DNA of 64,000 nucleotides from Phaeosaccion multiseriatum (GCA_965112735.1 OZ218965.1:1364001-1428000), one strand, 5' to 3'. Numbered from the stretch's first letter, positions 137-61,806 are shown. The notes: generated by a model not told the origin, from the letters alone. Numbers and translations are program-made.

Positions 137-3100
137 TCACCTCGGAAAAGCCCGCTTGAGGAGCCTCGCCCTCCCCCACTGCTGCGCGAGGAGCAAGGCG
201 TGCCGTACCACCAACCGCTGATGCCGAGCCATTTGTGAGTGGCTGTGAATTGCGCGGAGGCTCTTGAGCAGCTTCCAGCGAGGGAGCACCTTCGTGTGTG
301 GATGTGGGTGGAGGAGTAGGAGGAGGAGGAGGAGGAGGAGGAGGAGGAGGAGGAGGAGGAGGAGGAGGAGGAGGAGGAGGAGAAGGAGGAGGAGGAGGAG
401 GGGAGGAGGACTTAATTGTCGCCTCCAACAACCAACCTCCACTTTAAAAATCGCCACCACCAACCAACCTCGACATTTAGAATCGCCCCATCGAGCTCTT
501 AACTCGAGTGCGGTATGCTTCCTTGCCCCGCGTCTGCAGCACTCCGCCCATCGCCTCCAGCAACGACAGGTAGCATGTCGCCTTTGGAGAGAGAGAGAGA
601 GATAGAGAGGGAGGGAGGGGGAGGGAGAGAGACAGAGGGAGAGTGAGAGGGAGAGAGGGAGAGAGGGAGAGAGAGCGTGAGGAAGAGGGAGGGAGGGACG
701 GAGGGAGGGAAGGAGGGAAAGAGAGCGTGAGAGTGAGAGAGAGGAAGAGAGAGAAGGAGGGAGAGAAAGTGAGAGAGACAGAATGAGGGAGAGAGGGGGG
801 GGGGGGGGGAGGGAGGAAGGGGGAGAGAGAGAGTGAGAGGGAGAGAGAGGGAGGGACGGAGGCAGGGAAGGAGGGAAAGAGAGAGTGAGAGTGCGAGAGC
901 TTAAGAGAGAGAAGGAGGGAGAGATAGTGAGAGAGATAGAAAGAGGGAGAGAGGGGGGGGGGGAGGGAGGAAGGGGGGGAGAGAGAGAGTGAGAGGGGGA
1001 GAGAGAGGAAGGCAGAAGGAGAGAATGGGGGGGGGGGGGGGTTGAGAGAGTAAGAACATCAGACCCGACCCGAGAAGGGCCAGGGCCAGACCAGAGGGAG
1101 AAGGAACAAAGCACGAGTGGTGAGATGTGTGATGTGCAGCAGAACAACCGCAACACAACCGCACAACAGCAGCAAAAGAAGGAGGAGTGAGGAAGGGAGA
1201 TTTGTTACCATCACCTTCATCCGTCCGAAACCGATTCTTCTCGGCTCTGGGCCGGGCATGAAGCAAGCAGGAAGAAGGGCTCCATCTGTTTACTTACACC
1301 CCTAGACTGCCATCCATCTACACCTATCGATTGCCATCCTCCACCGTAACCTCCCATCATCCTCTCTGATGAGACTTGCCTGAAGTGTGCGTCCGCTTTT
1401 CGCCTGAGGGCCTGCCCTCTCCGCTCTTGTGCAAGCCGTCGCCAGGCTGTGACAAAGGCGCTAAGCATGCGGAACGACAGCGCGTGCACAGAGCAAGACG
1501 ACAGAGTAGACACAGCTTCTGAAACGCCATAGCCACCACAGCCAGAGCCGTCGGATTCGGAGGGGTGGGTGCCACCTGGTGAGGTGGGTGATGATGATAC
1601 AGCGGTTGGTGATACAGCGTCGGCGGTCCCACACCACAGCGAGCGCGCCACGGAGGGAGAGGGGGAGAAGGAGGAAGAGGCGAGCGACACAGAGGAAGAG
1701 AGGGAGGGGGAGGGGGAGGGGGAGGGGGAGGGGGAGGGGGAGGGAGGGGCGAGGAGAAGGAGCAGCCATGGCCTCTGCTGAAGAAGCGCCGCTTGCCGAT
1801 GGGTAGCCTGGGTGAAGACCGCCTGTGGGGTATGGGGTATGGGTGTATGGAGATTGAGGTAAAGGGTATGGGGTATGGGGTATGGGGTATAGTGTATGGG
1901 GGGGGGGGGTTGGGTCCCAGAAACGCCATGGTAAGTAAGATTACTTAAGGGTACGTGGATGTACCATACGCTGCCATCTGCCCCCCATCCCGCCGCTCCA
2001 TCCCAACGCCCCCCCCCCCATCCACTGCCATCTTGTTACTACGATACCTTCAGGAGACGGCGTTTCCTCCTCCTCTCGCGCCATGCGTGCATGACCTGTG
2101 GACCATACATTCACACACGCACACACACATACATACATACATACACACACGGACATGTACACACGCACACGCACACGGACACACCCATACGTGTACACAC
2201 ACACACACACATCACAAGAGAGTCAAGACAGCAGCAGGCATGAGTGTGCAGGGCATCGGGAAGGGGGTGGAAAGGGGTTAAGGAGTTGCACATCTGGTCG
2301 CTGCCAGTGGTGAGTGGTGGCGTTTTAAAGAAAGGGACGCGCTTTGACGGAGTACGATCAAAACAAGACACACAACAGAGCACCTAAGAAAGTCGACAAT
2401 CGAAAGAATGTCGACCCGCTCTACTGGTACTCGCCATGTGTAGAGTGGATATACTTCGTTCACGAGCCCTTCGTCTGACGTCCCTCGCAGCCTCCGCCAA
2501 GCACCTCCCACGGTGCTGCTTCCTTGTCCAGCGGCGGAAACCTTTGGCTCGTAGCAGTCCTTCCCGCAGCACGATGCCCCTCTTCATCCACACGCAGCAG
2601 CAGCGACATTTGGGGGAGGAGGAGGAGGAGGAGGAGGAGGAGGAGGAGGAGGAGGAGGAGGAGGAGGAGGAGGAGGAGGAGGAGGAGGAGGAGGAGGAGG
2701 AGGAGGAGGAATGGAAAGATGAGATTTAGTGGTGATGCCGTCGAAGTATCTGACATTTCGACTTGTGTCTGACATTTCGACTTGTGTCTGACATTTCGAC
2801 TTGTGTCTGACATTTCGACTTGTGTCTGACATTTCGACTTGTGTCTGACATTTCGACTTGGCGGATGTTGTGAGGGCACTTGAGACGCCTCCGCCCTTGG
2901 GAGACTCCTCTGAGTGAACGGGGGAGTATGCTTACGTATGCTTATGAATGTATGTGTGTGTATGTGTGTGCGTGCATGTGTGTTTGTGTGTGTGTGCATG
3001 TGTGTGTGTGTGCATGCGTGTATGTGTGTGTGAGCACGTGTGTGTGCATGCGTGTATGCGTATGTGTGTGTGCGTGCGTGTGTATTCGTGTTTGAGTGTG

Positions 3101-59088: not shown

Positions 59089-61806
59089 ATGGCGGCGCCA
59101 TCAGATTTCGATCGGAGCTATGACGATGACCTGGATAAGTTGTTGGAAATCGGTCAGCAAATGGCTCAGGGGCAAAAGGTAACCAAACTGCCAAGAGAGG
59201 AGACAGAAAAGAGGGATGAGATTGCAGGAGAATCGGCACGGATGGGAACTGACGCTCGCCTTGGCACTACCTCTTGTTTCGTCCCGTTCCCCCTTCCACA
59301 TTTGCTGTGTCTTGTCCTCTCTCTCTGTCTCTCTCTCTCTCTCTCTCTCACCGACTTGAAGGCTGGCGACGGTGAGCAGAACAAGCAGCAATTCGAGTAT
59401 GAGCTTCAGTCCTCGGATGGATATGAAGAGGAGGAGGAGGAAGAGGAGGAGGAGGAGGAGGAGGAGGAAGGGGGCCAGGAGGGAGACATCGGAGAAGACG
59501 ACGCGAACTCGAGCATGCTGGTGGGGCATAGTTTGCTGTCTATTGGAGGCACGCCACCCCCTGTGCTTCCTCCACCAACGTCAGAGCGTGTCGACCCGGG
59601 CGCGACGAGTGGGCACGGCGATGGAGAGGGCAGTGGGGGAGGTGGATGGATGGCTTCCCCAGGCAATGCGGAAGGGGGAGAAGGGGCGAGGGCGGCACCT
59701 GTGGCGGAGGCCCTCAGTATCGATGACGCCGAAGTGATGTACGTTGTGCAGCAGCTGCGGGACGACTTCGAGGACAAGGTGAGCTGTAGATATGTGCACG
59801 TTGCCCTTTCTCTCTCTCGACTGCGGATCTGTGCCTCTTCTTCCTGTCTTCTCTCTCTCTCTCTCTCTCTCTCTCTCTCGTGTGTGCACCTCTCAGAGCC
59901 TGAGGGAGTATCTCGAATGGTGTGGATATTTGGGAATGTTTCTGGAGGGTATTCTATGATTGTCTTTTCAGTGCCGCCCCGCGGCTTTGCCCTTCCTCCT
60001 CTGTGCCTACTCTTCTATGTAGCCACACTCTCCCTTCGGACAGCCTCGTTCCACCCGCCCGTCCCCGTCACCCTCTCCCGTCCATACTTCCTTCCACCCT
60101 CACCTTCTCTCTACCTTCTCTCTGCCAATCAAAAACTGCCCCCACCATGCAATCAATATATAAGGTGCTCACCAAGGCGTCTGGGTTAGTGGGCAGTCTG
60201 AAGAGGCGGCTGGAGGGGGAGAAGGAGGCCCAGCGTAGGCAGATGGAGGACGCACTGTATGCAGTCACCACTCAGAGCGAGGCGACCATCAAGTCGCTGC
60301 AGGAGGCTTTGCAAGCGCAGACGCAGCAAGCACAACAGCAAGAGGTGAAGATGGAGAGGCTATGCGACAAGATGGCGAACCTAAAGAAGCGCTCAGGTGA
60401 GGAGTGAGTGAGTGAGTGAGTGAGTGAGTGAGTGAGCGTATCTGTCCCCCGCCTCGGCTCTGCACCACCCCCTTGGCCTTCCCTTCTCTCCCTCTTGTCT
60501 TATCTTTGTTGTGCCTACTCCCCCCTCTCTATACATCTCCGTCTGAAGGCAAACTAGTGGGCGTGTCGGCGGGCTTCTTTCAATGGAGGGAGGCAGTCAT
60601 GGAGGAGCGGCAGCAGCGGCTGAACATTAAAAACGCCAACAAACACGCAAGGTACCTTACGTATTCATATACCCATGTCTAATAACTACACACACATAAG
60701 TGTAGGCAGGCTCGGTTTCAGCGTCAGTTTATTACACCACCCACCCAACCTGCCTACCCCTCTCTGCCTCTCTCTCTCTTCTCTCTCTCTCCCTCTCTCT
60801 CTCTCTCTCTCTCTCTCACACACTCTCTCCCTCTCTCTCTCTCTGCACAGAGCCCTGTACCAAGCCAAGGCCTTTGAGTCGTGGCGAGGGGAGACGCGGA
60901 GGAGGGCCGTAGAGCGCGCTGAAGACCTCGCTGAGCGGCGGCTTGAGGCTGTAACCAAGGAGATTATCCGCCGCTACGAGGACTCGCTGGAGCAGATGAG
61001 GGTCGAGCTCCACAGCGCCAATGAGCAGATACACATGGTGCGTGTATGCGTGTGTGCGTGTGTGCGTGTGTGCGTGTGGGTGGGCGGGTGTGTGAGCGTG
61101 AGTATGTGTATAAGGGGGGGGGGGAGGGGGAGGACCCGTCGGGAGGGGGAATCCTCGAGCAGACGAGCTTCACTTCACAGACCTTTGCGCTCACGTAACA
61201 GGCCCCACTTCCTCTCTTTTTCTCCCTCCCTCTCTGTCCCCGTCTTCCCTCTCTTCCTCCCTTCACCCCCCTCTTCCTCTCTTGCTCTCTCCCTCCCTCC
61301 CTCCCTCCCTCCTACTCTCCCTCCCCCCTCCCTCACCCCCTCCCTCCCCTCGCGCCCTGCCTGCCTGCCTCCTCCTCCTCCTCCTCCTCGTCCTCCTCGT
61401 CCTCCTCCTCCTCCTCCTCCTCCTCCTCCTCCTCCTCCTCCTCCTCCTCCTCCTCATCCTCATCCTCCTCCTCCTCCTCCTCCTCCTCCTCCTCCTCCTC
61501 CTCCTTCCCCCTTCCTTGCAGGAGCGCCAACGACAGAAGAAGATGGAGGATGACATGCGTCTGTCCATCCTTCGCGGCATATCTGTCATGAACATCGAAG
61601 CTACGAACCTCTTTGCAGAGAAGGACAGGGCGCCCTATGCTCAGGCTGAAGCAGCAGCACCAGTTGGTGATACAGCAGCAGCTGCTGCCGGAGGAGGAGG
61701 CGGATGGGCCGGGGGATATCCGAGTCAAGGAGGAGGAGGAGAAGGGGCTGTAGAGTCGGACGAGTATCCAAGACAGCAGGGCCCACCACACCCATCGATG
61801 CGATGA
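59089..61806 (+). CDS. POC5: Centriolar protein POC5-like (coiled coil, centrin-binding repeats)
   Basis: Exons give a coiled coil, Sfi1-type AGFFQWRE and AKAFESWRG, and MEDDMRLSILRGISVMNIEATNLF, which resembles the conserved POC5 box (M..AFMRGV.ALN.EA...F). Confidence 0.72.

Follow-up and report, generated by a model that had tools for sequence, protein, structure and literature searches.

A 9-nucleotide (nt) core, TTGGTGATA, flanked by CAGCAG on either side, recurs in nearly invariant form at about 22 loci within a single 64-kb stretch of the genome of the alga Phaeosaccion multiseriatum (GCA_965112735.1 OZ218965.1:1364001-1428000). This whole stretch of 64,000 nt, referred to here as the window, has a G+C content of 58% and is extremely rich in simple repeats. 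The flanked core, which we call the word, also occurs in RNA and in many genomic contexts outside the window, and the identity of its copies lies at the nucleotide level and not at the peptide level. We tentatively suggest that the word is spread by copying between dispersed CAG repeats.

The enrichment of the word is evident from several counts. The 11-mer GTTGGTGATAC has 11 exact matches in the window, against 0.02 expected from 100 dinucleotide shuffles, and CAGCAGTTGGTGATA has 25 matches at no more than two mismatches, against 0.13 expected. The full 21-mer CAGCAG-TTGGTGATA-CAGCAG yields 1, 11, 10, 2, 3 and 4 matches at 0, 1, 2, 3, 4 and 5 mismatches, respectively, where the shuffles predict 0, 0, 0, 0, 0 and 0.3, and the family drops off sharply beyond two mismatches. 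Roughly 27 of these 31 matches are clear, while about four, located at 8375-8666, are doubtful look-alikes from CAG runs. When a single CAG is required on each side of the core, four exact occurrences are found, as compared with a mean of 0.003 for 300 scrambled cores of the same composition. Furthermore, an unbiased k-mer count of the window returned the word and its sub-words as the top dispersed words that are not simple repeats. An earlier reading of the window from its sequence only (the sequence-only reading) had described a dispersed module and 11 exact copies of the 11-mer. Each of the loci it listed holds a copy and the 11 matches fall at exactly the places it gave, but it overlooked a copy at 200-220 on the minus strand and a weak one at 53950 on the plus strand. 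The copies are listed below (ORF, open reading frame).

200-220, minus strand: isolated copy with the GGTA variant and CGG flanks, four mismatches to the 21-mer.
1600-1620, plus strand: exact core with a CAGCGG flank, closely preceded by a degenerate GGTGAT(GAT)2ACAG unit.
6421-6441, minus strand: copy ending a CAG/CAA tract; together with CACCAAC downstream, the core forms a 7-bp palindrome around an ATA loop.
8031-8051, plus strand: exact core, no CAG tract on the downstream side.
8684-8704, minus strand: GGTA variant in a minus-strand ORF, bordering a long CTG/GCT tract.
10364-10384, minus strand: TTGGTAGTA variant.
17250-17300, plus strand: three tandem 15-nt units (GGTA, GGTA, GATA) in the METTL16-like ORF, read as TAVGG-TAVGG-TAVGD.
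17414-17434, plus strand: GATG variant in the METTL16-like ORF, in the other frame (EQLVMQ).
17576-17596, plus strand: GATG variant in the METTL16-like ORF, read as QQLVMQ.
19059-19100, plus strand: two copies 21 nt apart, CAT-TTGGTGATA and CAC-TTGGGGATA.
19204-19224, plus strand: GTGGTGATA variant.
25859-25879, minus strand: exact core, no CAG tract on the downstream side.
32197-32232, plus strand: two tandem units, TTCGTGATA and TTGGTGATA.
33155-33198, plus strand: two copies 23 nt apart, TTGGTGCTA and TTGGTGATA.
39083-39121, plus strand: two copies 18 nt apart, GGTA and GATA.
39318-39353, minus strand: tandem pair of TTGTTGATA-variant units, in opposite orientation to the two copies about 200 nt further upstream.
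40065-40085, minus strand: GATT variant with a TAG flank, adjoining (CAG)6.
40949-40969, plus strand: isolated GGTA-variant copy (core 40955-40963) without a CAG tract.
43885-43905, plus strand: exact copy in the Nup85 ORF with the reading QQLVIQ; three homologues lack the insert that contains it.
53950-53958, plus strand: weak candidate, TTGGTTATA, with a CGG flank, 17 nt past a donor-like GGTGAGT.
55310-55330, minus strand: isolated exact core with non-CAG flanks.
61658-61678, plus strand: exact core between CAG runs, with a CACCAG flank.

Alignment of 28 copies gives the consensus cag-CAGCAG-TTGGTGATA-CAGCAG-cag. All core positions are near-invariant except the seventh base, which is A or G (GATA or GGTA), and likeness to CAG falls off gradually past two triplets on either side. 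All copies have one orientation and phase with respect to their CAG flanks: position +9 is C in 28/28 copies, and the triplet preceding the core is CAG in 22/28, CGG in 4/28 and a single-base variant in the remaining two. The core is all-or-none, with zero truncated cores (5′ or 3′, of any length) between or next to CAG units, and members of the word's family account for eight of the 12 9-nt inserts found between two CAG runs in the window. Comparison of 300-nt and 64-nt flanks by blastn and Smith-Waterman alignment detected no sequence common to the copies beyond the CAG-like triplets, the only similarities being CAG/GAG simple repeats and neighbouring copies. The CAG units are therefore the only homology available for copying.

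Many loci carry a single unit, about five carry two and one carries three, in a roughly geometric fall-off; head-to-tail arrays of many units per locus were not found in the window, where single units predominate and no locus exceeds 3.5 units. Neighbouring copies are 15 nt apart at 17250/65/80, 32197/212 and 39318/333, and other pairs are separated by 18 nt (39083/101), 21 nt (19059/080) or 23 nt (33155/178), the last of these being an addition to the spacings already noted by the sequence-only reading. These distances represent the core plus a variable number of CAG-like triplets, the general form being 9+3k nt. Rare variants are common to neighbours (GGTA twice in tandem, TTGTTGATA twice, and GATG twice 160 nt apart), which points to local copying.

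Typical copies have no significant fold, with z-scores between -0.2 and -1.0. The sole palindromic copy in the window is associated with a perfect hairpin at 6418-6436 (GTTGGTG-ATA-CACCAAC; DNA fold z = -2.9). At 39083-39353, the sense pair and the inverted TTGTTGATA pair together make up a large interrupted inverted repeat, located in what appears to be a single plus-strand coding region.

Sequencing runs provide evidence from beyond the assembled window. Contigs from five runs, four of them on the sample matching the window and the fifth belonging to a different study, were aligned to positions 15300-21200 (5.9 kb). Single-copy depth in the four runs is about 500, 84, 50 and 31, and the motif-bearing bins reach a depth of 74,000-104,000 in the deepest run; depth at these bins is 150-200 times single copy. 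Pure CAG tracts were skipped in the depth mapping, with the (AGC)11 and (AGC)16 bins at or below single-copy depth, and the excess depth therefore comes from motif-bearing contigs of other loci. Averaged over the motif bases it corresponds to a few hundred copy-equivalents, a rough lower bound. In each run, dozens of distinct contigs start or end exactly at the motif (30-65 per position), and their continuations past it are CAG-rich but otherwise dissimilar. The fifth run, although automatically classed as DNA, behaves as RNA, since a canonical GT-AG intron at 16814-17017 is skipped in one of its contigs and depth is zero in intergenic bins; its contigs enter the motif region from both sides. 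Since all five runs, and thus both studies, yielded contigs with the word, it is not an artefact of assembly or polishing, a possibility that the sequence-only reading had named as a refutation. The same region contains a miniature inverted-repeat transposable element (MITE) at 20311-20853, which shows a contig depth of about 400-800 times single copy in the DNA runs and several variant positions; it represents a high-copy family without the CAG-tract word.

The genes that carry the word reveal at which level its identity is maintained. Exon status of copies is supported for two genes. The ORF at 15989-17878 encodes a METTL16-type methyltransferase (Pfam 5.5e-49; match to PDB 6b91), in which the segments aligning to human residues 103-142 and 180-245 are separated by 271 codons. 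Of these codons, 68 constitute the 204-nt intron at 16814-17017, which is in frame and stop-free and through which the genomic ORF reads; the rest is low-complexity sequence without counterpart in human METTL16. This insert of roughly 200 amino acids, comprising polyglutamine, TAVGG repeats and poly-E, lies between the S-adenosylmethionine (SAM)-binding region and the NPPF motif. Within it, the triple copy at 17250-17294 is read as T-A-V-G-G/D, and the copies at 17414 and 17576 are read as Q-L-V-M. A contig of the fifth run joins 17592-17825 to 18955-19391, and the ORF at 18798-20060 therefore probably represents the C-terminal portion of this gene, which would then bear eight motif copies. 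In the second gene, encoding Nup85 (Pfam 2.3e-32), the copy at 43885 is read as Q-Q-L-V-I-Q. Introns, which the sequence-only reading had named together with exons as sites of the word, are plausible at 53950, 17 nt after GGTGAGT. Separately, the copy at 40949 is followed after about 67 nt by a pyrimidine tract and CAG, resembling a short intron that starts G/GTGGTA.

Only Q-Q-L-V-I-Q and A-A-V-G-D-T-A would survive as readings of the word in translated exons, since TGA interrupts the third sense frame. Codon usage, taken from those parts of the window that are confidently coding, assigns TTG, GTG and ATA shares of 17%, 59% and 16% within their respective families; at these rates, TTG-GTG-ATA is expected for only about 1.6% of L-V-I. 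The variants observed (GGTA, GATG, TTGTTGATA and TTCGTGATA) are nevertheless all single-base changes and never synonymous codon swaps, and further copies occur on the antisense strand and in apparently non-coding DNA. Many copies do lie in long open frames adjoining polyglutamine, as convergence on a selected QQLVIQQ peptide in Q-rich proteins would predict. However, a peptide motif would keep a single frame and its peptide while its codons vary, and neither pattern was found among the copies. Two frames in one ORF, rare codons without synonymous change and inserts absent from homologues instead place the identity of the copies at the nucleotide level. On the same grounds, independent local slippage cannot explain the core, as the sequence-only reading had argued, and the peptide conservation that it named as evidence against itself did not emerge, the word-bearing inserts being absent from the METTL16 and Nup85 homologues examined.

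How might such a word reach so many loci? The leading explanation, although we hold it with some reserve, is template switching or ectopic gene conversion via CAG microhomology, combined with local slippage. CAG repeats are themselves a dispersed repeat family and would offer a route for the spread of the word, which could be regarded as a non-autonomous 'micro-repeat' consisting of TTGGTGATA and about two CAG units per side, without an enzyme or ends of its own. During stalled replication or break repair inside a CAG-containing stretch, the invading or nascent strand would pair with CAG units elsewhere, copy across the core of that other locus and return via the next CAG units, either by ectopic gene conversion through synthesis-dependent strand annealing or by microhomology-mediated template switching. 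Local slippage and unequal exchange would then yield tandem copies at 15, 18 and 21 nt and alter the number of CAG units between cores.

CAG-mediated copying would produce the constant orientation and phase, the all-or-none core, the absence of shared flanks, the triplet spacing and the variants shared by neighbours, and the location of copies in lineage-specific inserts of METTL16 and Nup85 also counts in its favour. The key step has a direct experimental precedent in yeast, where repair of a CTG tract cut by Cas9 led, in 2/38 survivors, to the copying of 211 bp from an imperfect CAG tract of the unrelated YAK1 gene, creating a chimeric repeat (PMC7413560). Whereas the enrichment, the DNA-level identity and the anatomy are direct observations, we infer from them the mechanism of copying, the direction in which it runs and a possible bias that favours it.

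Three observations weigh against this explanation. Firstly, about eight copies (200, 1600, 8031, 25859, 33178, 40955, 53950 and 55310) combine a perfect or near-perfect core with flanks that, on one side or both, contain hardly any CAG tract or none, and would require either switching on as little as 4-6 nt or decay of the flanks without decay of the core. The proposal of the sequence-only reading that the word is copied into CAG tracts through CAG homology agrees with orientation and phase, the all-or-none core and the lack of common sequence past the CAG flanks; in view of these eight copies, the word may either enter existing CAG tracts or carry CAGCAG flanks of its own. Secondly, the flanking CAG runs are only 6-27 nt long, shorter than classical homologous recombination uses efficiently. 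Thirdly, GGA/AGG tracts outnumber CAG tracts in the window (about 80 vs 55), yet their recurrent interruptions are trivial purine variants only. Generic exchange between microsatellites would therefore be insufficient, and a founder event or a property specific to CAG or to the word would be needed.

One such property may be a bias that makes interrupted tracts mostly donors. An extended form of CAG-mediated copying, which we consider conceivable but rather doubtful, is that the word is a selfish, enzyme-less 9-nt 'micro-element' confined to CAG repeats and spread by biased repair, and as such a new class. Pure CAG tracts would break or form hairpins and be repaired from interrupted tracts, turning the interruption into a net donor. 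This would amount to a homing-like drive without a dedicated nuclease, which would place L-V-I or V-G-D-T in low-complexity stretches of hundreds of proteins.

An unlikely alternative is RNA-templated addition, in which a reverse transcriptase, belonging to a long interspersed nuclear element (LINE) with a tail of the unit or to a telomerase-like activity with a template of about 1.5 units, starts synthesis at nicks or breaks in CAG/CTG tracts. A single unit or a small number of units would be added and the end rejoined via CAG microhomology, consistent with the geometric fall-off in units per locus and with the fixed orientation relative to CAG. The sequence-only reading had put forward this kind of activity, but the window does not bear it out. 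The copies form no 5′-truncated series with a fixed 3′ end and have no upstream sequence in common such as a 3′ untranslated region (UTR) would leave, which sets them apart from the tails of retrotransposons lacking long terminal repeats (non-LTR). No reverse transcriptase or endonuclease domain was detected in the 20 ORFs scanned of the 26 of at least 250 amino acids in the window, Rfam found no RNA family there, and spacings of 18, 21 and 23 nt misfit a fixed 15-nt template. Strand bias was rejected as a sign of an RNA mechanism: sense-strand copies make up 21/24 of those in long ORFs vs 17/20 for CAG tracts without the motif, and the motif-free tracts show an equal sense and Q-frame bias.

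It is improbable, in our view, that the word is a functional cis-element, that is, a stretch of 15-21 nt bound by a DNA- or RNA-binding protein that might mark or stabilise CAG-repeat DNA or transcripts, with selection keeping the core and some copying process spreading it. Isolated copies do retain a perfect core despite non-CAG flanks, the limit at two mismatches is sharp, and most copies are sense to transcribed genes and present in RNA contigs. Selection on the core should nevertheless conserve it more than its flanks, and this was not seen: the mismatch rate per base is 0.115 in the core vs 0.08-0.12 in the flanks, for copies picked by total mismatches. The sense bias equals that of motif-free CAG tracts, the word is absent from 39 kb around the Nup85 genes of distant relatives, and a function would leave the arrival of copies at new loci unexplained.

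Less probable still is an origin of the copies from a (CAGCAGTTGGTGATA)n satellite, or from a longer mobile element ending in the word, pieces of which would have been dispersed by extrachromosomal circles or transposition and eroded to the core. The short tandem arrays of up to 3.5 units are compatible with such an origin, as are two pairs of copies, 8037/25865 and 40955/55316, which are alike for about 45 extra bases downstream. In the first pair, the copies at 8031-8100 (plus strand) and 25800-25879 (minus strand) also share about 35 nt upstream of the motif, with the common pattern TTGGTGATACGGC...ACTTT.CGT...TGG.G..GG.GTGG, and may be paralogous segments rather than independent insertions. 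In the second, the isolated copies at 40949-41025 (plus strand) and 55260-55330 (minus strand) are followed by a similar stretch of about 45 nt that ends in ACGTACCCGT. Across the copies, however, and leaving out neighbours, downstream sequences resemble one another no more than random segments do, and the continuations past the motif in other contigs are CAG-rich without a common sequence. The master array suggested by the sequence-only reading was not seen: the window contains no long array, and none of the best-supported joints in the contigs of four runs is a high-depth joint that goes back 15 nt, although this last point is weak since repeats were skipped. No terminal inverted repeats (TIRs) were found either.

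Peptide convergence and an assembly or polishing artefact can be dismissed, both being refuted by frame use, codons, homologues and run contigs.

Comparison with known classes of sequence gave further negative results. A DNA transposon or MITE would span at least about 50 bp and be delimited by TIRs and a target-site duplication; the unit here is 15-21 nt long, is not self-complementary and has direct CAG flanks. A structured RNA is not indicated, as there is no Rfam match at the gathering threshold and no tRNA in the window. Three local resemblances were likewise rejected. A snap-back origin through pairing of upstream CACCAC with GGTG shows no enrichment over control CAG tracts, the similarity of G/GTGATA to the local 5′ splice site G/GTGAG is discounted as 9 nt cannot be an intron, and the likeness to a tRNA A box (CAGTTGGT) is accompanied by no tRNA-like fold and no Rfam or ARAGORN match.

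Searches were also extended beyond the window. The nearest Nup85 homologues, identified by an exhaustive HMMER search of 1.84 billion representative proteins, are only 33-34% identical, and a search for close relatives with the TAVGG-peptide region returned nothing. The exact 21-mer has one match in 241 million metagenome records (L001, 1392-1412), in an unrelated, non-repetitive context on a 2.3-kb contig. This match is taken as chance, and the word may thus be used as a genome-specific marker; no exact match was found in a viral collection. Among about 8.4 million full texts, string searches for the word and its flanked forms retrieved only primers, and concept searches found nothing similar. 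Two further features of the window are recorded here. An exon for mitochondrial elongation factor G (EF-G) is most similar (about 75%) to diatom sequences, which suggests a stramenopile origin, and tandem arrays among 2749-2860, 9630-9783, 12375-12434 and 3678-4077 have unusual units of 19 nt (x5.9, 100% identity), 17 nt (x9.1, 96%) and 23 nt (x2.6, 100%), with a (GGAG)99 tract also among these intervals.

Several known systems share individual properties with the word. CAA or CAT units interrupt the CAG/CTG tracts of ATXN1, ATXN2 and HTT and stabilise them. Like the word, these are non-CAG units that are in phase, are inherited with the tract and break the pure repeat; in contrast, they are single codons that arose locus by locus via point mutation, whereas here one complex 9-nt word occupies about 22 loci in 64 kb and many elsewhere. 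Hypervariable minisatellite families of the Jeffreys type have a common but degenerate core of 10-15 bp in long, mostly non-coding arrays. Here, too, a short core is common to many dispersed tandem-repeat loci, with a unit of about 15 bp, but it is almost invariant, comes in 1-3 units, is embedded in a trinucleotide repeat and has many copies in exons. Some non-LTR retrotransposons target microsatellites (Waldo, Mino, Kibi, Koshi and Dong) and others carry UnaL2-type LINE tails; their insertion is guided by pairing of the RNA 3′-end repeat with the target, and their fixed orientation is a likeness, yet here no sequence related to reverse transcriptase, 3′ UTR remnant or truncation series was found. 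In the protist genomes of Eimeria, CAG repeats and a telomere-like heptamer are spread through coding and non-coding DNA. As in the present case, both CAG tracts and another short, non-CAG repeat enter genes whatever the frame, but the heptamer forms arrays of its own and resembles the telomere repeat, whereas the fixed 9-mer is unrelated to telomeres and interrupts CAG tracts. MITEs and bacterial repetitive extragenic palindromic (REP) elements are likewise very short, of high copy number and without an encoded enzyme; the word differs in having no TIRs, hairpin or clear target duplication, and is far shorter than known MITEs. Finally, in the yeast YAK1 capture a break in one CAG/CTG tract also led to copying of the interior of an unrelated tract, but as a rare induced event (2/38) in a laboratory construct and not as a genome-wide family of one word (PMC7413560). 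In summary, the word lacks the defining features of a transposon, a retroelement tail, a peptide motif or a known RNA; in its action it resembles a CAG-tract interruption, and in its distribution a core common to a minisatellite family.

For this alga, the word calls for caution in gene prediction and repeat masking. If its movement is indeed driven by homology, the genome would be a natural record of ectopic exchange or template switching between trinucleotide repeats, which, to our knowledge, has so far been seen only as rare induced events in yeast. Exchange of this kind bears on human repeat-expansion diseases, in which the stability of a tract is governed by its interruptions. A sequence far too short for a transposon would then still constitute a dispersed, self-propagating family that remodels coding low-complexity regions proteome-wide.

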